From the sequence record NC_020851.1: a stretch of 64,000 nucleotides of DNA. One strand, given 5' to 3'. A program made the translations under genes and the position numbers. Numbering within the stretch: the first letter of the stretch is position 1; every line of letters starts with the position of its first letter. This document shows, one piece after another, positions 22,787-42,801 of this stretch. The notes under the pieces are model-generated. The model saw nothing but the letters and a program-made list of their open reading frames with translations. It ran no database searches and was not told where the DNA came from.

Positions 22787-23326
22787 TTAGAGTGCTTCCA
22801 AATTTTCTACCAGTATTTTGAGTTCTTGTAGGGTGGCATCATTTTTGAGTGTGTTGGCTCTGTTACTGATGACCCACACATTACCTTTGATGTATCCTTT
22901 CTCTGGAATAATTTTATCCAGTGAAGGATTGTTTGGGGAGTTTCTAACCTCCGTGCTTTCAATTTTTATACCAAGCAACGGACATCTCTCTGGAATAATA
23001 ATATCAGAAAGTTCAATATTAAAGGCAAGATTATTTTTCTTTGCCCTATTTTTTGCTCTTGCTAACATTTTATATTCTGTTGTCTTTGAGATTGCGTTGG
23101 GGTCAAATCTTTTCTTATTTGTCTCAACAGATCTTTCTCTACGAAGACATCCACAGGATTGAGTTTTGCCAGAAACTATTTCGTGTCTTCTGGTTGTAGA
23201 AGTGCTCCCACCACAAGAGCAAGAGCATTCACATAGAACATACTTTTTACAAGGAGATTGATACTCTCGTAAGATAGTCAATCTCCCATAAGTATTACCA
23301 ACTAAACTTTTCCTTTTATAAGACAT
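22787..23326 (-). CDS. Free-standing HNH-type homing endonuclease downstream of psbD
   Basis: N-terminal GRLTIL...CECSCSCGG...SGKTQSCGC; C-terminal CPLLG...PSLDKIIPEKGYIKGNVWVISNRANTLKN. Confidence 0.8.
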   Translation of the reverse strand: MSYKRKSLVGNTYGRLTILREYQSPCKKYVLCECSCSCGGSTSTTRRHEIVSGKTQSCGCLRRERSVETNKKRFDPNAISKTTEYKMLARAKNRAKKNNLAFNIELSDIIIPERCPLLGIKIESTEVRNSPNNPSLDKIIPEKGYIKGNVWVISNRANTLKNDATLQELKILVENLEAL

Positions 23327-23386: not shown

Positions 23387-24442
23387 TCAAAGAGCATTAC
23401 CTCTTGGAAGGATTTCCTCAATTACAGGAAAGTTTTCGTGTGGTTGGTCAATAGTCATCATCCATTCACGGAGGCCATTGTTCAACAAAATATTTTTCGT
23501 GTAGAAGGTCTCATACGAACCATCTTCAGCAGCACGAATCTCTTGACTCACAAAATCATAAGCACGAAGATTAAGAGCAAGCCCAATGATGCCAATAGAA
23601 GAGACCCAAAGACCCATGACAGGAACAAACAACATAAAGAAGTGCAACCAACGCTTATTGCTAAACGCAACCCCGAAGATTTGTGACCAAAAACGATTTG
23701 CTGTAACCATCGAATAGGTCTCCTCCTCCTGAGTGGAATCGAACGCTTTAAAAGTGTTTGCCTGTTCTCCATCTTCATACAGTGTATTCTCGACAGTAAC
23801 TCCATGAATAGCAGAGAGAAGTGCTCCTCCCAGTATACCAGCAACTCCCATCATATGGAAGGGGTTGAGCGTCCAGTTATGAAAGCCCTGGAGGAAGAGA
23901 AGGAACCTGAAAATCGCCGCAACACCGAAACTCGGCGCAAAGAACCAAGATGACTGTCCCAAAGGATAGATGAGGAATACAGACACGAATACAGCAATAG
24001 GACCAGAAAAAGCAATCGCATTGTAGGGACGGATTCCAATTAGACGTGCCAGTTCAAACTGACGTAACATAAAACCTATAAGTGCAAAGGCACCGTGGAG
24101 AGCAACAAAGGACCAAAGCCCTCCAAGTTGGAGCCACCGTTGAAAGTCCCCTTGAGACTCAGGACCCCAAAGTAGAAGAAGAGAATGACCCATAGCGTCA
24201 GCAGGCGTCGAGACAGCTGCCGTAAGAAAGTTAGCACCCTCAAGATAGGAACTAGCAAGTCCATGGGTGTACCAACTCGTAACAAAAGCTGTGCCAGTAA
24301 GCCAACCGCCAATGGCAAGATAAGCAGTGGGAAGAAGTAGGAGTCCAGACCAACCCACAAAGACAAAGCGATCCCGTTTAACCCAGTCGTCCAAGATGTC
24401 AAACCATCCCCTCCCTGATTGTTGTAATGTTGAAGTAGTCAT
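23387..24442 (-). CDS. psbD: Photosystem II D2 protein
   Basis: [27 protein letters not shown], ends PRGNAL; C-terminal lumenal segment unusually divergent. Confidence 0.98.
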
Positions 24443-24497: not shown

Positions 24498-24592
24498 TGA
24501 GAAGTTATACCTACTTTATGTTTCCGGTAGAGTTGAGGCCAAGTGTCCCGAATAATCTCTGCCAACTTATCGGGTGTGGATGAACTAATCAC
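24494..24592 (-). CDS. Small hypothetical protein (32 aa)
   Basis: GTG start overlapping the talC stop; MISSSTPDKLAEIIRDTWPQLYRKHKVGITSH. Confidence 0.5.
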   Translation of the reverse strand: MISSSTPDKLAEIIRDTWPQLYRKHKVGITSH

Positions 24593-25254
24593 AGACCCTT
24601 GACAGAGTTCCAATCTTTCTGGAACTTCTCAAGACCTTGATCTGTTAGAACATGATTATACATTCCCCAAAATACATGAGGTGGAATTGTACAGATTTCT
24701 GCACCGGCATCAAAACATCTTCCTACTTGATGAACATCACGAACTGATGCGGCAATAATCTTAGTAGTACTAAAGTGTTGATTATAGAGACTAGCAATAG
24801 TCTGAACGAGTGCTACTCCAGAAAGAGAGTTATCGTTCATTCTCCCTACAAAAGGAGAAATATATGCGGCACCAGCACGACGTGCAAGAATTGCCTGTGC
24901 TGCAGAAAATATAAGAGTTACATTAACCTTTCTTCCCACAGAAGCAAGTGCTGTACATGCCTTCAATCCTTCTACAGTACAAGGAACTTTGATTGTGACA
25001 TTCCATAGTCCTTCAAATTCCATTGCCTGGTCAATCATTTCTTCGGCAGTATCGGCAACAACTTCTGCCGATACAGATTCGAATTGATTACTCATAGAAG
25101 AAATCTCTTTGATAACTTCTACAGGATCCATACCACTTGCTTTAATCAGAGTAGGATTGGTTGTAATACCCTCAATCATTCCTGTTGTGTTTGCTTCACT
25201 GATTGCATCAACATCAGCAGTGTCTAAAAATAGTTTCATTAGTTTGCAATTCAA
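24589..25254 (-). CDS. talC: Transaldolase (TalC family)
   Basis: LFLDTA, GITTNPTLI, SAEV (catalytic Glu), TIKVP (Schiff-base Lys), NVTLIFS, YISPFVGR. Likely start at MKLFLDT. Confidence 0.95.
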   Translation of the reverse strand: MNCKLMKLFLDTADVDAISEANTTGMIEGITTNPTLIKASGMDPVEVIKEISSMSNQFESVSAEVVADTAEEMIDQAMEFEGLWNVTIKVPCTVEGLKACTALASVGRKVNVTLIFSAAQAILARRAGAAYISPFVGRMNDNSLSGVALVQTIASLYNQHFSTTKIIAASVRDVHQVGRCFDAGAEICTIPPHVFWGMYNHVLTDQGLEKFQKDWNSVKGL

Positions 25255-25708: not shown

Positions 25709-26218
25709 TTATTTGAATTTTTCTTTTTTCAATATTCTATATCCAGAAGCAGATTTATTATAATTTTTTAATGTGCTTTGAGTCCTCCATAAATTCCCAG
25801 TTATTACTCCATTTTCTCTACACCACTTTCTCAAATTAATACATTCATAAATCGTTCCACTATTAATATTCTCTATTGTCCAAATCCATCTGCAAATAGA
25901 ATGCTCACTATTTTTTTGATTATTTGTCCATTCTAGATTGCAAACTCTATTATCATCTTTTATTTCATTAATATGATTTACTTGAGGAAAATTATTTGGA
26001 TTTGGAATAAAAGTTTCTGCAACCAATCTATGAATTCTTTTATTATAATGTTTGTTATTTTTCATTAATCCCACAAATAAATAACCCTTTTGATGGTAAC
26101 GCAATTTCAATTCACGGAAAGTTATATTCCTATTATCACCCGGTCCCGTGATTTTATCACTAAAAACTTTACCATCCTCAGTAATATAATATCCTGGAAA
26201 ATCTTTTAGTTCTTTCAT
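25709..26218 (-). CDS. NUMOD4-HNH homing endonuclease
   Basis: YYITEDGKV..., KGYLFVGL, IHRLVAETFIPNPNNFPQVNHINEIKDDNRVCNLEW. Confidence 0.88.
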   Translation of the reverse strand: MKELKDFPGYYITEDGKVFSDKITGPGDNRNITFRELKLRYHQKGYLFVGLMKNNKHYNKRIHRLVAETFIPNPNNFPQVNHINEIKDDNRVCNLEWTNNQKNSEHSICRWIWTIENINSGTIYECINLRKWCRENGVITGNLWRTQSTLKNYNKSASGYRILKKEKFK

Positions 26219-26222
26219 GATC

Positions 26223-26588
26223 TTAGTGTTCTTGTAGATATTCTATCATACTTTGGAGAGTTTGGGTGTTGTCTCCTACCAGCCCCAGTGCAGTGTTGCA
26301 GTTGTTGCAGAGCACACCCCGTATCTTATTTGTTGAGTGGCAGTGGTCAATACATTTCTTGGTTAGTTCTGCATCACATATTTGGCAGTTTGTATTAGAC
26401 ATCAAGTTATTATATTGGTCTTCTGTGAGCCTAAACTTTCTTCGTGCAACCTCATGGGGTTTATAGTATTGTCTACGAACTTCTCTTTCACAGTCCTTAC
26501 ACTTTGATTGGACACCAGAAGGTCTGCTGCTCCTTTTAGAAAAACAAGAAAGTTCTTTTGTTTCTCCACATCTGCTACAAGTTTTCAT
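26223..26588 (-). CDS. Endonuclease VII-family free-standing homing endonuclease (F-CphI-like position and family)
   Basis: CSRCG...CKDC, CQICD...CIDHCHSTNKIRGVLCNNCNTALG; immediately downstream of psbA; late promoter at 26615-26622. Confidence 0.85.
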   Translation of the reverse strand: MKTCSRCGETKELSCFSKRSSRPSGVQSKCKDCEREVRRQYYKPHEVARRKFRLTEDQYNNLMSNTNCQICDAELTKKCIDHCHSTNKIRGVLCNNCNTALGLVGDNTQTLQSMIEYLQEH

Positions 26589-26684: not shown

Positions 26685-27764
26685 TCAACCGATGGAAGGA
26701 GCAGTAAGTGCTACAGGAGTTGACTCAGCAGCAGCAAGATCCAATGGAAAATTATGGGCGTTCCTTTCGTGAATCACCTCTAATCCAAGACCAGCACGGT
26801 TGAGAACGTCTGCCCAAGTGTTGAGCACACGACCCTGTGAATCAATCACAGACTGATTGAAGTTGAAACCGTTGAGATTGAAAGCCATCGTGGATACACC
26901 AAGTGCGGTGAACCAGATGCCAACAACGGGCCATGCAGCAAGGAAGAAGTGCAAGGAACGTGAGTTGTTGAATGAAGCATATTGGAAGATCAAACGACCG
27001 AAGTAGCCATGTGCTGCGACGATGTTGTAGGTCTCTTCTTCTTGACCGAACTTATAACCATAGTTCTGTGACTCAGTTTCAGTCGTCTCACGGACGAGTG
27101 AAGATGTAACCAGACTTCCGTGCATAGCAGAGAAAAGAGATCCACCGAATACCCCAGCAACACCGAGCATGTGGAACGGGTGCATAAGGATATTGTGTTC
27201 TGCCTGGAATACAAGCATGTAGTTAAAAGTACCAGAGATACCAAGAGGCATAGCATCGGAGAAAGAACCTTGACCGAAAGGATAGACGAGGAATACTGCA
27301 CTCGCAGCAGCGACTGGAGCAGAATATGCTACACAGATCCATGGACGCATACCTAAACGATATGAGAGTTCCCACTCACGTCCCATATAAGCATAGATGC
27401 CGATAAGGAAGTGGAAGACTACCAGTTGGAAAGGACCACCGTTATACAACCACTCATCGAGTGATGCTGCTTCCCAGATTGGGTAGAAGTGGAGACCGAT
27501 TGCATTTGAACTTGGGACAACTGCACCAGAAATGATGTTGTTGCCATACATAAGTGAACCAGCAACGGGTTCACGAATACCGTCAATATCGACGGGTGGT
27601 GCTGCGATGAATGCGACAATGAAGCAGACAGTTGCTGCTAACAGTGTTGGGATCATCAGTACACCGAACCAACCAACATACAAACGGTTGTTAGTTGATG
27701 TCACCCACTCACAGAAATTCTGCCATGGGGATGTAGATTGTTGCCTTGAAAGAGTTGTAGCCAT
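26685..27764 (-). CDS. psbA: Photosystem II D1 protein (no intron)
   Basis: Uninterrupted 359-aa D1 with [37 protein letters not shown]. Confidence 0.99.
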
Positions 27765-34886: not shown

Positions 34887-35011
34887 AAATCTCCTCCAGA
34901 AAAAATAACATCAACTTGAAACACATCACCCTTCCTTAAACTATCAGTGTCTTCATCCATCCAGATGTTTTCACCAATAATTTCATAATTGTCAAATCCA
35001 ATACTATTCAT
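34883..35011 (-). pseudogene. 42-aa ORF resembling the C-terminal tail of an FkbM-type methyltransferase
   Basis: MNSIGFDNYEIIGENIWMD...DVFQVDVIF; ATGA-coupled on both sides. Confidence 0.4.
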
Positions 35012-35958
35012 AAGTATACTTCCTTAAATTTTTGGCAGACTTTTTCTGGAGTGTAGTCTTGATAACAATTCCATTCTAAAGAATTTATTTCCTTCTTATC
35101 CAAATTTCTTAAGATATGAAGAATATCGGAATAATTTTCATAATAAATTCCTTTTTCTCCAAGTGTATCTATATGGTTTCTTTCTGGAGATTTTTCATAA
35201 GTAATCACAGGTTTATTTCTAATTGAGAACTCTGCACATGATAGACCAAATGATTCTCCAATATACCTAGCATGGAGCATAGCATCACATGTATTAATAA
35301 ATTTTACCTTAGTGTTCATATCAGAGGTGCCTGGTAAATGAATCACTCGTTCATGCTGAATAAAAGGTTCTGTAAACTGAAAAACAAACCAGATATCAGA
35401 TCTCTCAGACAATACTTGTTGTATTGCTTGTTTTACAAAAGGCAAATCAAAAGTTTCCCATCCACCATTTCTACCAAGAACTAAAGCATTCTTAGGAATA
35501 GATAACTCTTCTCTCATATCTTCCTCAATCTCAGGAAGATGCACTATGTAAGGAACATATGGGATAGTATAATTCGTTATTTTAGATAACCATTTAGATC
35601 CCATAGCATAGATATCACCATGAACCCAATTCGATTGCCAATTACCAGAAATAGCATTAACAAGATTTTTACTAACCGAAGATATAACTCCATCCGGATC
35701 TCCACCTTTTTCCATTAAGAAATAATCACATTTATTTTTATCCAAAATAGAATCTATCCCACTGACAGTATCATAAGAAAAAACCGAAAACTCTTTTTCA
35801 AATTTTTTCAAAGCATCGATACTATTAGCAGGATGAGTAGAGGGATACATGATAATTGGATCGACACCAAGGTAATATCTGGTCCAATATGCCCAATCAT
35901 AAATTGCTACAGTAGTCCCTCTCAAAGAGAGGGAATTGTCATGAAAAGCTATCTTCAT
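35008..35958 (-). CDS. GT-B fold glycosyltransferase-like protein
   Basis: RGTTVAIYD, GRNGGWETF, CDAMLHARYIGESFGLSCAEF. Confidence 0.75.
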   Translation of the reverse strand: MKIAFHDNSLSLRGTTVAIYDWAYWTRYYLGVDPIIMYPSTHPANSIDALKKFEKEFSVFSYDTVSGIDSILDKNKCDYFLMEKGGDPDGVISSVSKNLVNAISGNWQSNWVHGDIYAMGSKWLSKITNYTIPYVPYIVHLPEIEEDMREELSIPKNALVLGRNGGWETFDLPFVKQAIQQVLSERSDIWFVFQFTEPFIQHERVIHLPGTSDMNTKVKFINTCDAMLHARYIGESFGLSCAEFSIRNKPVITYEKSPERNHIDTLGEKGIYYENYSDILHILRNLDKKEINSLEWNCYQDYTPEKVCQKFKEVYL

Positions 35959-36764
35959 TTAGAAATTTTTTGTTCCAAATCTTTACGGGCAGTATCTCCA
36001 AGTCCATCCATTTGTTCAAAGAAGGCAAGAGATAGATTGATGTTGTCATCAGTAATTGTTGGACTAAAAGGACCAACTGGTTTGTAACCATACTCCATAT
36101 TCAGAATACGTTGGAAGTTATCTCCTTGGAAAATATCTGCCCAACACTTCTCACCGATGGTAGGAACTGTATCAAGATAGAATGAATAAATGATTTGTTC
36201 GGTGGTTCTCTGACTACCAGTAATAATTTCAGTATTTCCAAAATTGCACTGATTTACAAACGCAATAGCAGACTGTGCATCAATACCAACCTCTTCCATA
36301 CGACCAGGAATGATACTAATATATCCAACATCGTAAGTGCAACACTTCAGTGCAGTTGAAGAATCAGCAAGGCCAGTAACATTAGTAATTACATATTCAT
36401 TGAACTGATCGACATACTCTAATGCTTTCTGGTAGGGAGGAATCTTCATACCAACCTTACAGGTTCCTTGAGTTGCATCAGTAATGATCTTTGCATATTC
36501 AAGGATTATTTCGGGATCAAGATGAGAATAAGGTGCTTGAATATGAACTTCACCTTCATTGTCTCCACGAATATCTGCAACCAACTTACCCATGACTACA
36601 GCATGATCTAACCACTCATCAAGATGATACTTATCAATCTTACTAAATGCATTTGGATTTGTAGTTACACCACGAACCCATTTTGGATTGATATCAGATC
36701 CATACTTATCCATAGTAGATTTTATAAAATCCACATTTGCAGTATCAAAGAAAAAGTCTCTCAT
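35955..36764 (-). CDS. Divergent transaldolase/FSA-family class I aldolase
   Basis: FFFDTA, GVTTNP, GMKIPP (Schiff-base Lys), TNVT, YISIIPGR; Gln (HIQ) at the position of the transaldolase catalytic Glu. Confidence 0.8.
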   Translation of the reverse strand: MRDFFFDTANVDFIKSTMDKYGSDINPKWVRGVTTNPNAFSKIDKYHLDEWLDHAVVMGKLVADIRGDNEGEVHIQAPYSHLDPEIILEYAKIITDATQGTCKVGMKIPPYQKALEYVDQFNEYVITNVTGLADSSTALKCCTYDVGYISIIPGRMEEVGIDAQSAIAFVNQCNFGNTEIITGSQRTTEQIIYSFYLDTVPTIGEKCWADIFQGDNFQRILNMEYGYKPVGPFSPTITDDNINLSLAFFEQMDGLGDTARKDLEQKISK

Positions 36765-37117
36765 AATTGTTTCAAAGTTTCGTTAAAAGTTTTCCAGTTT
36801 TCTAGTCTGACTGCTTTATCGTCAACATAAAAATCTGCAACCGGTTTTCCAAAGTGAAGTTCATCATAAGGAATACCGTGTCTATCTAGCCATTCTACCA
36901 CAATGGGTGATTGATTGGCAATAATTTTACCCAGATTATTATTGTGGGTAACCATGTTTCTAGCAGTCATTATGATAATGTAATGACCTTCTTCTTTTAG
37001 TTTCTGAAGAGTCTCTATTGCACCAGGAATAGGTTTTACATCACTATAATGTTCACCTTCTTTTCTTATATAACAGAGAGTTCCGTCAAGATCAAAACAA
37101 AATTTATAATGTTTCAT
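36761..37117 (-). CDS. Small HAD phosphatase (capsule-biosynthesis type)
   Basis: FDLDGT, MTARNM, FGKPVADFYVDDKA. Confidence 0.88.
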   Translation of the reverse strand: MKHYKFCFDLDGTLCYIRKEGEHYSDVKPIPGAIETLQKLKEEGHYIIIMTARNMVTHNNNLGKIIANQSPIVVEWLDRHGIPYDELHFGKPVADFYVDDKAVRLENWKTFNETLKQL

Positions 37118-38069
37118 AAATTTGATTTAAGATATCCAATCCAGTAATGAACATTGCTTTCTGTCTCTCTAGACTATCATAATGTCTAGCACACATACCA
37201 ATAAAAATACATCCCTCAATCAATATTATCTTTTGATAATCAAAACCAAATCGATTAACCAGATCTACAAACTTCTTATTGATGTTTTGTTTGTTGGATT
37301 CATTCTCAAACTTAAGATCAAACTGATTGCCATTTACATTTACATCAAACTTATCGTAAATGAAATACTCATACCCACCATTGCATGAGTGAGAGATTTT
37401 TGCTAAGTCATAATAAGGATCACCATAATATTTGGTTTCACCAAACATGCCTCTAGGATCAATCATTTTAAGAATTAGATCATTTGTGATGGAATTTACT
37501 CCATACAAAATATTACTAAAACAGAGATCACCATGGATGAAATAGAACTTATCTTCAATTAATTTTGTTTCAATAAATTCTTTTATCTTTCCCCAAATAC
37601 TATCAAAAGATTTAAGTGTCTTTCCATTCAGAACAAATTCATCAACGTTCATCAGTTCTCTGAAGAAATCAAAGTTATACATCAGATTAACATATTCATT
37701 TTCAGTCTTATCAATGAACATCAAAAGAGAATCTCTCCGATTAGCATCGATTGATTGGGAATTCTTATAACAGTTAATATATCCTAAAAGAAAATCAAAT
37801 GCATTTTCCCAAAAGGTATCATCATAATCAGATGATACCATTACATTTCCAAGATTATTATAAGCGTAATATTCCAACTCCAAAGAGTATGGATTTTTTA
37901 AATTACAATCAATTAGTCTTGGAAAAAATACTTTTAGATTACTAGGGAGATCCAAATAATAATTTGCTTCTCCCTTTAATCTATCTTCCTCACTTGTTTT
38001 AATAACACTAGCTTTGGTTTGAGGATTCAGAGTAAATCTATTATATGCTCTAGTCGTAAATTCCATCAA
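37104..38069 (-). CDS. APH/choline-kinase-fold sugar kinase-like protein
   Basis: HGDLCFSNIL, MIDPRG, GDPYYDLAKISHS. Confidence 0.82.
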   Translation of the reverse strand: MMEFTTRAYNRFTLNPQTKASVIKTSEEDRLKGEANYYLDLPSNLKVFFPRLIDCNLKNPYSLELEYYAYNNLGNVMVSSDYDDTFWENAFDFLLGYINCYKNSQSIDANRRDSLLMFIDKTENEYVNLMYNFDFFRELMNVDEFVLNGKTLKSFDSIWGKIKEFIETKLIEDKFYFIHGDLCFSNILYGVNSITNDLILKMIDPRGMFGETKYYGDPYYDLAKISHSCNGGYEYFIYDKFDVNVNGNQFDLKFENESNKQNINKKFVDLVNRFGFDYQKIILIEGCIFIGMCARHYDSLERQKAMFITGLDILNQIYETL

Positions 38070-39493
38070 ACTTTTGCCATAGACTCAAGTGTTGCCTCAT
38101 CAACAGCAGACAATGGAACACTACCTTCAGAATCTTTATTGTAGACTTCATCATGAAGTTCTTCAATAGAAACAAATGTGAGGTTATAAATGTCAGCAAA
38201 TTGCTTAAGATCATCTCCCTTGATCATTTTGCCATACTCATCCATAATCTCAATGATCACCCCAACTTGCTTCATGCCAGCAAGTTTCAAAATTTCCACA
38301 CAACCCTCAGTGTGTCCACGTCTTTCACTCAGAAGTCCTGGACGTGCACGAAGTGGGAACAAGTGACCTGGTTGAGCAAGAGAATCTGGTTTAGAAGAAT
38401 CAGACAGGAAAGTGGAGATAGTTGCTACACGATCATTAACAGACATGCCAGTTGTTGCACCTTCAACAGCATCAATACTGGTGGCAAAGGGAGTTCCAAA
38501 CTCATCACATCCGTTCGAATGCATCATTGGAATACCAAACTGATCCAGTTTTTCCTGTGTGCAGGGAAGGCACATCAAACCACGAGCATGACGCATAGCA
38601 AACAGAAGGTTTTCTGCAGTTGCTTTTTCTGCTGCTAGAACAATATCACCCTCAAACTCACGGTCATAATCATCAACCATGACAATAGGTTTACCATTAC
38701 GAAGATCTTCAACTGCTTGCATTACATTTTGACGTTTAATGTGAAGCATAATATCATTTGGACTACCGAGAGAAACAAACTCATCATCTGCCATATGATA
38801 ATTCATAACTTTTTTGCCTTCAGAAATTAAATAGTTGTAAGTGAGAGATACATACTTTTCCTTAACACAAGACATTTTGCCAGTAGACCATCCAGCGTCC
38901 GTATCATCAGACATTAACTGCTGAGAACTTTCAATAAAATAATTTCCTTCTTTCCAATAGAAAATTCCATTCAGTGCTAGAGGAGAAATTGCAACTTTTT
39001 CGGCAAGACGTGTTGCATATCCATTATCATTGAGTTGAATATGACTGTAAGGACTGTCGGATCCCACTTCAATACCTAAATGATCGTAAGTACTCACAAC
39101 TCCATCAGGATCATTATCTCTAATAAAACTGAGGAACTTATTAGAGTTCCAAGGAGTATACTGATCACAATTGGTGACAACTAGTGGTTCAGAGGTATCA
39201 ATGTTTGCTTTTTGAATTCCCAACAAACAAGTTTCTGCTTGACCAAGTGTTGACTTTCCAATGTCAACGATTTCCAAATTCAGATAGTATTTTTCCTTAA
39301 TACTATTGAGGATATTGATATAGTCTTGTTCTAATCCATTAACAATAACAAAATATTTGCCCGTAAGTTTCAAAGAAGAAAGAGCCCACTCAATCAAAGG
39401 TTTACCTTTGAACTTCACAAATGGTTTGGGATCGATATATCCATTATTTTTAAACCTGGTCCCAAGACCGGCAATTGGAAATAAAATGTTCAT
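38066..39493 (-). CDS. ribB: Fusion of a sugar nucleotidyltransferase and 3,4-dihydroxy-2-butanone-4-phosphate synthase (RibB)
   Basis: N-terminus ILFPIAGLGTRF...PKPF, TLGQAETC, NCDQ, LGSP; C-terminus DDYDREFEGDI, GLMCLP, TTGMSVNDR, PGHLFPL, RRGHTEG, IIEIM. Confidence 0.88.
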   Translation of the reverse strand: MNILFPIAGLGTRFKNNGYIDPKPFVKFKGKPLIEWALSSLKLTGKYFVIVNGLEQDYINILNSIKEKYYLNLEIVDIGKSTLGQAETCLLGIQKANIDTSEPLVVTNCDQYTPWNSNKFLSFIRDNDPDGVVSTYDHLGIEVGSDSPYSHIQLNDNGYATRLAEKVAISPLALNGIFYWKEGNYFIESSQQLMSDDTDAGWSTGKMSCVKEKYVSLTYNYLISEGKKVMNYHMADDEFVSLGSPNDIMLHIKRQNVMQAVEDLRNGKPIVMVDDYDREFEGDIVLAAEKATAENLLFAMRHARGLMCLPCTQEKLDQFGIPMMHSNGCDEFGTPFATSIDAVEGATTGMSVNDRVATISTFLSDSSKPDSLAQPGHLFPLRARPGLLSERRGHTEGCVEILKLAGMKQVGVIIEIMDEYGKMIKGDDLKQFADIYNLTFVSIEELHDEVYNKDSEGSVPLSAVDEATLESMAKV

Positions 39494-39506: not shown

Positions 39507-40178
39507 TTAAATTTCTGAGGTCGTTTTGTTTCTTAAAAATACCCAACCACCATTTGAGGCAGATGGATTTACACATACCATATTCATCTTTTCACGATAT
39601 TCTCTCAGACTATGAAAAAATAATCTGTGATGGCACAAAGGTATCTTATCACTTTGTAGATAGTTTGTCAAATTGTCATATATTTCACAGATCTTTAAAA
39701 TTTTATCTGCTGAAGCACAGAACCATTTGGCATCTAGATGTGTATTTAACCATTCAATACCTTTGACGTATGAAAAATAAAGTTCATCTTTATCCATTTT
39801 ATACTCTTTTATTGATTCATCACAAATACATCCAGCATCTGTTCTGGTGACAATAACAAAATCATATTCATCATCAAACTTTTTTATAATTTCACCAACT
39901 TTTTTCAATGAGTATATTGGTGAAATTGTTTGAAATACACTTTTTGTTATCTTAGATAAATCTGTCTGTTCCGGTATATCGCAAAAATCTTCCTTTTGTT
40001 TTTCTATAATTACTTCCTTGAAATTAAATTCAGAAAGCAATTCATCTTTATCTAAATCAGGGTCCTCCCAAAAATGAGCATAAAAATCTACATCACATCC
40101 ATCATAAAAATTTTCAAAGTTATCTTTCCATAGATCATAGAATCTAGGATATCCAAAAAAACAAATAGCAATTTTCAT
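39507..40178 (-). CDS. Putative glycosyltransferase-like protein (paralogue 1 of 3)
   Basis: MKIAICFFGYPR...YDFVIVTRTD; same pattern as 40182 and 42010. Confidence 0.6.
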   Translation of the reverse strand: MKIAICFFGYPRFYDLWKDNFENFYDGCDVDFYAHFWEDPDLDKDELLSEFNFKEVIIEKQKEDFCDIPEQTDLSKITKSVFQTISPIYSLKKVGEIIKKFDDEYDFVIVTRTDAGCICDESIKEYKMDKDELYFSYVKGIEWLNTHLDAKWFCASADKILKICEIYDNLTNYLQSDKIPLCHHRLFFHSLREYREKMNMVCVNPSASNGGWVFLRNKTTSEI

Positions 40179-40181
40179 AAT

Positions 40182-40910
40182 TTACCAAGAATGTCTGTCA
40201 GGGTCCATTACAAACCAACCAGATCTATTGGGTTGTTTTGCAATGGGATCTATCCCACCATTAACCGGGATTCTTATTAATCCCATTCTATGTATATGAA
40301 TTCCATTATAGGTTTCTGGGTGAAATGCATTTCCTTCATCAAAATATTGATCAACATAATCAATACAAGATGAATACTTATTCATAGTTTCAGAATTACA
40401 TAGAACAGAAGTATCGGATACACCAAGCTTGTTTACAGATTTAAAATCCCATGCAGTTGGAATTAAAATATTCTCATCAATCTTTGCTCTTTCCAATTCG
40501 GTATCTGTTATTGAGGTGTGCCACAAAGCATCAGCTCTAGCCTTTAAACATAAGTCATAAGTAAAATCATTTTCTTTCTCATACTCCAGTTTCAACTCGT
40601 TCACCTTCTTTAGATTATACATTCCAGACAACCAAGTATGAGGTGTTGTTTCTGGTCTTTTTCTCGCATTAAACTTTTCATCATTTGAATGAACTTCCTT
40701 TCTAACTTCTTCAGTATACTCTCTGAGAATATACTTCTTAGGATTCCAGAGTTCTCTAACTTTCTGATCACAATAATCCATGCCCATTTTATTAGGATGT
40801 CCTGAGAAAAAAATATCAGGAGATAGTTTATCAAGAACTACCTCCTTTAGAGAATCATAATCATTTACAAAACTGTCTAATCTACCAATTATAAGTAAAG
40901 CTATTTTCAT
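40182..40910 (-). CDS. Putative glycosyltransferase-like protein (paralogue 2 of 3)
   Basis: MKIALLIIGRLDSF...YDLCLKARAD...HPET. Confidence 0.6.
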   Translation of the reverse strand: MKIALLIIGRLDSFVNDYDSLKEVVLDKLSPDIFFSGHPNKMGMDYCDQKVRELWNPKKYILREYTEEVRKEVHSNDEKFNARKRPETTPHTWLSGMYNLKKVNELKLEYEKENDFTYDLCLKARADALWHTSITDTELERAKIDENILIPTAWDFKSVNKLGVSDTSVLCNSETMNKYSSCIDYVDQYFDEGNAFHPETYNGIHIHRMGLIRIPVNGGIDPIAKQPNRSGWFVMDPDRHSW

Positions 40911-42009
40911 ACAAATCTTGTTGTTGAATTTATATTTAATATCTGATCCTTTATTTCTTCAGTATATACTCCTGCACGAAGAATTACAGTTGGACTATCT
41001 ATATCTCTCAAAACTTCTGGTGATTGAATTGTCAGATCAGTTCCATATAATCTTTTGCCCTGCTTCTTTGTATCATTATCTAATATGGATACAATTAAAT
41101 TTTCATCTATTCCAAAATTCAGAAGGGTTTGAGAAAACACATGGGCACCAAAAAGGTAAACATTATCTTCTATATCATCAAGTATATTAGATACATCACT
41201 TTTTAATTTGTAAATATAATCTAAAAACAAATCTTTTGAATATTCAAAGTTTACATCAACTTTGCCAATGTCACTAGATTTAACTGCTTTTACAAAAATA
41301 GAATGAGTATCAACTACTTTTTTGTCGATAGAAAATCCTGCTCTTGCTAACACATGTTCCAAAACAAACTCATCAAGATAGTAAGTGTGTTCGAAATTTA
41401 TAGTGTTTGTATATCCCCGTTTCAACCAATGCCTCATATTTGGTATTGAGATAAACTGAACACCATCATCAGTAAGATCCTCAAATATTTTTTTAAGAAA
41501 CTCTATGGGATTGTACGCATGTTCAAAAACATGAGAGTGAATAATACATTTATATTTCTCATCAAAAGATTGTGTTTCATAGAATCCTCTAACATATTTC
41601 AATCTAGAATCAGAGGATTCCTGATGTGATGGTTCAATGATTTCATAACTGAACTGAGAATCTAGAGTAGAAAAGTTTTTCCACAAACTTCCAGATGCTC
41701 CACCTATTTCAAGATACCGATCAATGTTATCAGAGTTTTCGATAATAAAATCAAAAAATCTTTTGTGATGTTGTTTCCATATCTTTCCAACACTTCCAGG
41801 AGTATGAGAATTTTCATACAGGATATTAGGATCAATTAAAGTCTTCAGTTGAACTAATCCATTCTCAGAAACACCCCAATCTTGATCAAAAAAGATATCG
41901 TCTTCTACAGGTGTATCAACGCATCCCATAAAGACAGGAAACTTCTCTAAGGTGTATAATTTTTTACGGATGTTTTATTATCTAAAATACAATTGTTTCT
42001 TTCAGTCAT
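40907..42009 (-). CDS. SAM-dependent sugar (C-)methyltransferase-like protein, frameshifted near the N-terminus
   Basis: LEIGGASG, HSHVFEH, SIPN, FEHTYY, FGAH...ILDND..KQGKRLYGT. Coupled ATG at 42009 joins LYTLEKFPVFMGC only if the A6 at 41960-41965 is read as A7. Confidence 0.75.
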
Positions 42010-42801
42010 TTATGAATACCAGTTTTTAAAAAATTCGTAATCACTATAGTTTTCAAGTCTAAAACAGTCTCCAAGAACTCTATGAAAACTTTGAATCCTA
42101 ATTTGATTCTCAATGCATTGTGCGTACATCATTCTACATGCATCATATTTACCATAATTAATATAATGATTTGTTTCTGCTAGTTTGCCATAATCTTCCC
42201 AACAATTACAGAGAATATCCATTGTTTTGGAATTTCCCAACAAGAACATAGAGTAAATTCTATTGGGAGAATATGTTTTTCCAGTGTTAATATGATAACA
42301 CACATTCTCCAGATCATCAAAATATTCTTCAATATCAGTATGTAAATGTAAAAAGTCAGGACGACTTCTTATTACAGCATCATATGTAAATAAATTATCA
42401 CTTTCATATTTTCTCTTCATCTGAGCAGCAAGATGCATTGTATAGAATTCTGGACTACTGCTTGCCACCAAACCATACTCTTTATTATTATACCATCTAT
42501 GCAATAAAGATTTTATTTCATCGGAGCAAAGATTATCAAGATACTCATCATAATCTGATATCACATAGTCCTTTACATTTACAAACTTTTCAATATCACT
42601 AGTGGTTATAACATCATCAACGTCATCTTTGTATAATTCAGGATTCTGAGATCTAACACTCCACATAGAAACACCACGATTTTTCCATGTAGATATGAAG
42701 ACATCACAGTTAAATTTTTCACTCAATCTATTAGTGTTCTCTAGAACCTTTGGATGATCAAAGGTCCTCATTTGTCCACAAAGTAGTAGTGCTGTTCTCA
42801 T
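42010..42801 (-). CDS. Putative glycosyltransferase-like protein (paralogue 3 of 3)
   Basis: MRTALLLCGQMRTF...YDAVIRSRPD. Confidence 0.6.
   Translation of the reverse strand: MRTALLLCGQMRTFDHPKVLENTNRLSEKFNCDVFISTWKNRGVSMWSVRSQNPELYKDDVDDVITTSDIEKFVNVKDYVISDYDEYLDNLCSDEIKSLLHRWYNNKEYGLVASSSPEFYTMHLAAQMKRKYESDNLFTYDAVIRSRPDFLHLHTDIEEYFDDLENVCYHINTGKTYSPNRIYSMFLLGNSKTMDILCNCWEDYGKLAETNHYINYGKYDACRMMYAQCIENQIRIQSFHRVLGDCFRLENYSDYEFFKNWYS

Follow-up and report, generated by a model that had tools for sequence, protein, structure and literature searches.

Why does a phage that already encodes a canonical transaldolase carry a second, divergent gene of the same family? The question is raised by SWZG_00039, a gene in the 64,000-nucleotide window (the whole stretch of DNA analysed here, from record NC_020851.1) taken from the 208 kb genome of Synechococcus phage S-SKS1, whose host is strain WH7803. 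A six-frame search of that genome returned two genes, and no more, of the transaldolase (TAL) family:

24589..25254, minus strand: canonical talC, 221 amino acids, with Glu and Phe present (PF00923, 173.5 bits; TIGR00875, 221 bits); the comparison gene.
35955..36764, minus strand: SWZG_00039, 269 amino acids, a predicted class I aldolase of a virus-only clade with the fold of transaldolase and fructose-6-phosphate aldolase (FSA) (PF00923, an AlphaFold2 model and its homologues).

We propose, with a probability of roughly 0.7, that SWZG_00039 is a specialised class I aldolase in a nucleotide-sugar pathway based on 3,4-dihydroxy-2-butanone 4-phosphate (DHBP), which would serve the phage glycan island and not the pentose phosphate pathway. 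Within the transaldolase/FSA family the clade stands as a genuine and conserved variant, restricted to viruses, in which both the catalytic-site pattern and the pathway context are new; the function proposed for it is putative.

The kinship of the protein can be followed from its profile scores. It reaches 47.6 bits against Pfam TAL_FSA (PF00923), above the gathering cut-off of 27 (46.7 bits in the six-frame search), and 30.3 bits against TIGR00875, the NCBIfam fsa/talC equivalog, far under the cut-off of 245.95. RefSeq and IMG label it ‘transaldolase’, and it shares PHROG 440 with talC. The AlphaFold2 model (predicted local distance difference test, pLDDT, 95.8; predicted template modelling score, pTM, 0.92) matches 1vpx, 3s0c, 3r8r, 1l6w and 1onr with a Foldseek probability of 1.00, the best matches being short transaldolases and FSA. 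When the family profile is compared with the PDB, the short TalC-type transaldolases score best (1e-12 to 1e-10) against 0.07 for FSA, and hhalign gives an E value of 3.5e-12 to the phage talC versus 1.7e-3 to E. coli FsaA. By these measures the clade is nearer in sequence to the short TalC-type transaldolases than to FSA. A phylogeny had been suggested in the first-pass annotation of this DNA; in our maximum-likelihood tree the family is monophyletic (SH-like approximate likelihood ratio, SH-aLRT, 99) on a very long, saturated stem, and because long branches meet at this point, the attachment of the clade to the TalC-type or the FSA side is untrustworthy.

What sets the clade apart is its active site. 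Residue equivalences were drawn from three concordant alignments (phmmer with the T. acidophilum transaldolase, TacTAL; MAFFT with FsaA, FsaB, TalB and the phage talC; and hhalign), and invariance was counted over 116 dereplicated homologues with identities down to ~33%. The codons concerned are as follows:

36537..36539, minus strand: Gln76, equivalent to TacTAL Glu60, TalB Glu96 and FSA Gln59; invariant (116/116).
36309..36311, minus strand: Ile152, equivalent to TacTAL Phe132, TalB Phe178 and FSA Tyr131; invariant (116/116).
36444..36446, minus strand: Lys107, the predicted Schiff-base lysine, equivalent to TacTAL Lys86, TalB Lys132 and FSA Lys85; invariant (116/116).
36543..36545, minus strand: His74, a candidate replacement proton shuttle, at a position that is Tyr or His only across the family.
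36315..36383, minus strand: Asn128, Thr130 and Ser150 (transaldolase-type dihydroxyacetone pocket and water site) and the family-specific Asp134.
36207..36302, minus strand: phosphate-site residues Arg155 (36300-36302), Ser184 (36213-36215) and Arg186 (36207-36209), equivalent to TalB Arg181, Ser226 and Arg228; invariant.

The first-pass annotation had pointed out that a Gln and Ile pair matches neither transaldolase (Glu/Phe) nor FSA (Gln/Tyr), and our alignments with TalC and FsaA bear this out, with Gln and no Glu at the catalytic position. Its numbering of the two pairs (Glu60/Phe132 and Gln59/Tyr131) agrees with the title of PDB entry 4xz9 (E60Q/F132Y) and with PMC13259622, and the motifs it quoted are present in the translations (SAEV and SPFVGR in talC; HIQAP, SIIPGR, DTA and TTNP in the paralogue, which also has GMKIP). 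Since Gln76 and Ile152 are both retained in every homologue down to the lowest identities sampled, the pair is a family signature, beyond chance, and not a one-off. The complete invariant set consists of Asp7, Asn36, Gln76, Pro78, Lys107, Asn128, Thr130, Asp134, Ser150, Ile152, Pro153, Arg155, Ser184 and Arg186. Asp7 and Asn36 (the latter within TTNP) correspond to TalB Asp17 and Asn35, Asn128 and Thr130 to TalB Asn154 and Thr156, and Ser150 to TalB Ser176; FSA has Leu107 and Ala129 at the positions of Asn128 and Ser150. Ile152 itself sits in the motif S-I-I-P-G-R, as against S-P-F/Y-V-G-R in other family members. In FSA, Leu107 and Ala129 form the pocket that sets donor scope, and the C4 alkoxide receives its proton from Tyr131, which acts as the shuttle (PMC13259622). 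With the catalytic Glu/Phe of transaldolase absent, and Tyr131 and Leu107/Ala129 of FSA likewise, the protein fails the defining features of both enzymes whilst retaining all else. The ‘FSA-type’ label attached to the gene in the first-pass annotation is accordingly not favoured, as the Asn128/Ser150 pocket is of transaldolase type, the FSA Tyr is absent and the hhalign values lie on the TalC side. Given the weak sequence relation to FSA, Gln76 was probably acquired independently and not inherited from that enzyme.

Which residue, then, might move the protons? At position 74, two residues ahead of Gln76 on the same strand, 76 of the 116 sequences have Tyr and the other 40 have His, with at least six switches between the two on the tree; the reference enzymes have Ser or Phe. 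Both Tyr and His can transfer protons, and no other residue is accepted at this position, which makes residue 74 a candidate to stand in as the acid/base. Two residues ahead of Lys107, position 105 is Gly or Ala in 108/116 (Thr, Val or Leu in the references), and this small residue may give space for Tyr/His74 in the barrel layer beneath Lys107 and Gln76. Asp134 is a second candidate acid/base.

The pathway context is suggested by the genes that surround the aldolase in S-SKS1:

36761..37117, minus strand: small HAD (haloacid dehalogenase) phosphatase, 118 amino acids (TIGR01689, 1e-26), with a 4-base frame overlap with the aldolase gene.
37104..38069, minus strand: small-molecule kinase of the APH/choline-kinase fold, 321 amino acids (AlphaFold2 pLDDT 90.5), with an invariant HGDxxxSN motif.
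38066..39493, minus strand: nucleotidyltransferase-RibB fusion, residues 1-250 being a sugar-phosphate nucleotidyltransferase and residues 255-447 RibB.
35008..35958, minus strand: putative glycosyltransferase, 316 amino acids, directly downstream of the aldolase with a 4-base overlap (weak Glycos_transf_1 match).

The phosphatase, kinase and fusion genes all lie upstream of the aldolase gene, the reading frames of the cassette overlap by 4-14 bases, and the aldolase overlaps both of its neighbours by 4. We mapped the cassette proteins on 53 related loci; of these, 39 are distinct, and their aldolases range in identity from 33 to 97%. The aldolase adjoins the kinase in all 39 distinct loci and the HAD phosphatase in 38; RibB occurs in every one, either on its own or as part of a fusion, and a sugar-phosphate nucleotidyltransferase in most, with a second nucleotidyltransferase in several. 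The order across loci is RibB, kinase, (nucleotidyltransferase), HAD phosphatase, aldolase. Fusion partners vary by lineage: nucleotidyltransferase and RibB are joined in S-SKS1 and many other loci and separate in others, whilst L053 and L054 have a fusion of nucleotidyltransferase and HAD phosphatase (L053:6890-7999). Such variation between lineages is classic evidence for a single pathway. The cassettes are set in glycan islands containing glycosyltransferases, epimerases, dehydratases and methyltransferases, and the downstream glycosyltransferase of S-SKS1 accompanies the cassette in 13/39 loci. We did not find the cassette described in the literature on RibB with transaldolase and nucleotidyltransferase, viral ribB, DHBP branched-sugar aldolases, TIGR01689 or 9iqw.

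The individual assignments differ in strength. The RibB half of the fusion matches PF00926 at 5.4e-65, scores 188 bits against TIGR00506, above the ribB equivalog cut-off of 177, and aligns gap-free to E. coli RibB at 40% identity; the N-terminal nucleotidyltransferase domain is weakly MurU-like. The family profile of the HAD protein finds 1xpj (7.5e-31), the ‘capsule biosynthesis protein’ 9iqw (8e-17) and, weakly, GmhB (7e-4) in the PDB. RefSeq names this 118-residue protein ‘phosphoheptose isomerase’; its actual type is the TIGR01689/1xpj HAD phosphatase. For the kinase, Foldseek matches of the model include APH(3′), 5-methylthioribose kinase, choline kinase and maltokinase, which gives it a fold typical of anomeric as well as small-molecule kinases; its family sequence profile gave insignificant kinase matches only against the PDB, and a family profile search gave close unnamed relatives only.

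The constant linkage with a cassette containing RibB argues that the aldolase most likely takes part in making an activated sugar and not in the pentose phosphate pathway. The first-pass annotation had suggested a class I aldolase dedicated to glycan precursors, and the invariant signature, together with the conserved cassette of RibB, kinase, nucleotidyltransferase, HAD phosphatase and aldolase, speaks in favour of that suggestion. The aldolase would be the cassette's only enzyme that forms a carbon-carbon bond. 3,4-Dihydroxy-2-butanone (DHB) cannot cyclise by itself and DHBP is already phosphorylated, yet the cassette combines the aldolase with phosphatase, kinase and nucleotidyltransferase, which implies an extension of the carbon chain to a cyclisable sugar whose phosphate is then moved before activation.

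How widely is this system spread? A word-index search gave at least 181 homologues of about 265-270 amino acids and a scan of viral contigs a further 48 loci; the 116-member set was dereplicated from the two together. No clade member was detected in 185,579 prokaryote species genomes (one per species) by single-protein and family-alignment scans, whose reach extends to loci retaining either of two near-invariant motifs. In the ESM Atlas the closest clusters are viral to 98-100%, and among 50,697 phage records S-SKS1 is the sole cultured carrier (protein search; 100% identity at identical coordinates). As far as found, the clade is confined to viral or metagenomic DNA. Pieces of 35008-39493 occur at 90-99% identity in contigs of three aquatic or marine metatranscriptome libraries and in a 2025 run named ‘organism A’; the contigs of the three libraries cover parts of the aldolase, HAD phosphatase, kinase and nucleotidyltransferase-RibB genes, with DNA carry-over possible. 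Close relatives of S-SKS1 thus occur in nature, and the metatranscriptome contigs lend weak support to transcription of the cassette there.

In the scheme that we favour, the cassette would convert ribulose 5-phosphate, via the RibB product DHBP, to a nucleotide-activated sugar for the phage glycan island. Lys107 would carry a dihydroxyacetone unit held by the transaldolase-type pocket of Asp7, Asn36, Asn128 and Ser150, and the phosphate of the acceptor would bind the retained Arg155/Ser184/Arg186 site, which in transaldolases takes the phosphate of glyceraldehyde 3-phosphate or erythrose 4-phosphate. DHBP differs from glyceraldehyde 3-phosphate in bearing methyl instead of hydrogen on the carbonyl carbon, and so it fits as the acceptor. 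The dihydroxyacetone unit would then add to the C2 carbonyl of DHBP to give a branched ketose phosphate, 4-C-methyl-hex-2-ulose 6-phosphate; this ketone-accepting chemistry is a tentative proposal, possible rather than probable. Gln76, Ile152, Tyr/His74, Gly/Ala105 and Asp134, on the strands around C4, could provide space for the methyl group and a re-routed path of proton transfer. Through kinase, HAD phosphatase and nucleotidyltransferase the phosphate would subsequently be relocated to the anomeric carbon and the sugar activated, in a manner comparable to the GmhB-type and AmgK/MurU-type routes. Condensation with DHBP would, as the first committed step, open a route peculiar to phages that leads from ribulose 5-phosphate to a new branched-chain nucleotide sugar.

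The same evidence can be read in other ways. An FSA-like aldolase might take RibB-derived DHB, with or without its phosphate, as the Schiff-base donor and an aldehyde such as glyceraldehyde 3-phosphate as acceptor, yielding a 1-deoxy or branched ketose. Gln76 does correspond to FSA Gln59, the linkage to RibB is strict, and FSA naturally favours 1-deoxy donors such as hydroxyacetone. We nevertheless think this arrangement unlikely: the donor pocket consists of the polar Asn128/Ser150 rather than the 1-deoxy-friendly Leu107/Ala129 of FSA (PMC13259622), Ile replaces the catalytic Tyr, the phosphate of DHBP is only two carbons from the carbonyl and so too close for the conserved distal phosphate site, and DHB bears a substituent on its nucleophilic carbon, which no known FSA donor does. 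The first-pass annotation had put DHB forward as a donor; a polar pocket for the C1 hydroxyl and an intact distal phosphate site favour DHBP as the acceptor instead. If the dihydroxyacetone pocket and phosphate site, which are the same as in transaldolases, are taken at face value, the enzyme might make or reshuffle a standard ketose phosphate (fructose 6-phosphate, sedoheptulose 7-phosphate or octulose 8-phosphate) for a heptose-like nucleotide-sugar route, the RibB product being used otherwise in the island. The trio of kinase, HAD phosphatase and nucleotidyltransferase does resemble the GDP-heptose route, down to the weak GmhB match, but the replacement of the catalytic Glu and Phe in every member would go unexplained, as would the constant adjacency of RibB, which in some loci is joined to the nucleotidyltransferase; a sugar-phosphate isomerase is missing from the core cassette and the phage already has a canonical talC, and we hold this possibility to be quite improbable.

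Much less credible is an ordinary, redundant transaldolase, a second auxiliary metabolic gene of the pentose phosphate pathway like talC. The RefSeq and IMG names and the shared PHROG would suit it, but the catalytic Glu and Phe are missing in all members, the TIGR00875 score is 30 bits against a cut-off of 246, the stem branch is very long and the gene always lies within glycan cassettes. The absence of both known acid/base solutions for chemistry at the C3-C4 bond, Glu and Tyr, could also mean that the protein forms a Schiff base but is no aldolase, acting as an isomerase or epimerase on DHBP or a ketose phosphate or as a non-catalytic scaffold. Such a role is very improbable, since all other catalytic and binding residues are invariant, the Thr130 water site included, and it would leave the cassette with neither a chain-extending enzyme nor a cyclisable sugar to activate.

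In the proposal of a specialised aldolase acting on DHBP, the fold, the residue pattern and its invariance, the linkage and the viral distribution are observed, and the substrates, product and order of steps are deduced. Several points weigh against it. We know of no natural glycan that contains a 4-C-methyl-hexulose. If the product is a ketose, either its anomeric C2 would have to be phosphorylated or an isomerase would be required, and the cassette contains no isomerase. The placement of Tyr/His74 and Asp134 relative to Lys107 comes from strand register only, and with both Glu and Tyr gone the acid/base catalyst stands at candidate level. Finally, aldolases seldom use a ketone as the acceptor; according to PMC6202814, only one kind is known to do so.

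Other genes near the cassette deserve mention. A RuBisCO-large-like protein of 409 amino acids (PF00016; L061:11070-12299), accompanied by a conserved partner gene encoding 102 amino acids, lies 1-3 kb from the cassette; the gene is also present in L062, L063, L036, L037, L040, L042, L046, L048, L031 and L033, in two clades of viral contigs, and S-SKS1 lacks it. As RuBisCO-like proteins enolise keto-sugar phosphates, this protein may act on the same intermediate. In S-SKS1, three paralogous proteins of unknown function are encoded upstream of the fusion gene (39507-40178, 40182-40910 and 42010-42801, all minus strand); hhalign between two of the families gives an E value of 2.4e-42, matches to DUF7796 are weak, and a WavE-family gene occupies the same place in L004. 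They occur in 13-20/39 cassette loci and are candidate transferases for the sugar made by the cassette. A methyltransferase with a sugar C-methyltransferase C-terminal domain (PF08484) is encoded at 40907-41929 (minus strand) and occurs in 12/39 cassette loci. Around talC, the gene at 23387-24442 (minus strand) is named ‘photosystem II D1’ in RefSeq; its sequence looks like D2 (PsbD), the true psbA being at 26685-27764. An endonuclease gene (22787-23326) adjoins this PsbD-like reading frame, and genes for an HNH endonuclease (25709-26218) and an endonuclease VII (26223-26588) lie between talC and psbA.

The clade represents a third active-site solution in this family, Gln/Ile with Tyr/His on the layer below, next to the Glu/Phe of transaldolase and the Gln/Tyr of FSA, and proton transfer must accordingly differ from both textbook mechanisms. 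Should DHBP be the substrate, the RibB product would feed glycan synthesis, a second metabolic fate besides riboflavin, and the enzyme may be a rare ketone-accepting aldolase of use in the synthesis of branched sugars. Virome surveys may miscount viral ‘transaldolase’ and ‘ribB’ genes as auxiliary genes for the pentose phosphate pathway and riboflavin synthesis, whereas cassette members are probably neither. A laboratory system is at hand in S-SKS1 growing on Synechococcus WH7803.

How does the clade compare with known systems? With the short, subfamily 4 TalC-type transaldolases (B. subtilis 3r8r, T. acidophilum 3s0c, T. maritima 1vpx and the S-SKS1 talC) it shares the TIM barrel, the Asp, TTNP, the Schiff-base Lys, the Asn/Thr water site, the Ser/Asn dihydroxyacetone pocket and the Arg/Ser/Arg phosphate site. 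It departs from them in the changes of Glu to Gln and Phe to Ile, of Ser to Tyr/His two residues before the Gln, and to Gly/Ala two residues before the Lys, in the invariant Asp134, and in a C-terminal extension of ~50 residues; its genes lie in glycan cassettes and not in a pentose-phosphate context, and are found in viruses only. With FSA (FsaA/FsaB, PDB 1l6w) it has in common the Gln where transaldolases have Glu, as well as the fold, Lys, Asp and Thr, but Ile takes the place of Tyr131, Asn/Ser that of the Leu/Ala donor pocket, and Arg that of Lys at the second phosphate position. The change of Glu to Gln on a transaldolase scaffold has a parallel in the engineered variants TacTAL E60Q/F132Y (4xz9) and TalB E96Q/F178Y/R300E (9qpk); in these Tyr was placed at the Phe position, whereas the natural clade has Ile there and Tyr/His on the neighbouring layer of the Gln strand.

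Established routes to activated sugars include KdsA/KdsC/KdsB (CMP-Kdo), GmhA/HddA/GmhB/HddC (GDP-heptose) and AmgK/MurU. The logic of the cassette would be similar: once a sugar phosphate has been formed, its phosphate is repositioned by a HAD phosphatase together with an anomeric kinase, and activation by a nucleotidyltransferase follows. What would distinguish the phage route from all of these is its proposed carbon source, the DHBP made by RibB, and its condensing enzyme, a Schiff-base aldolase with the transaldolase fold.

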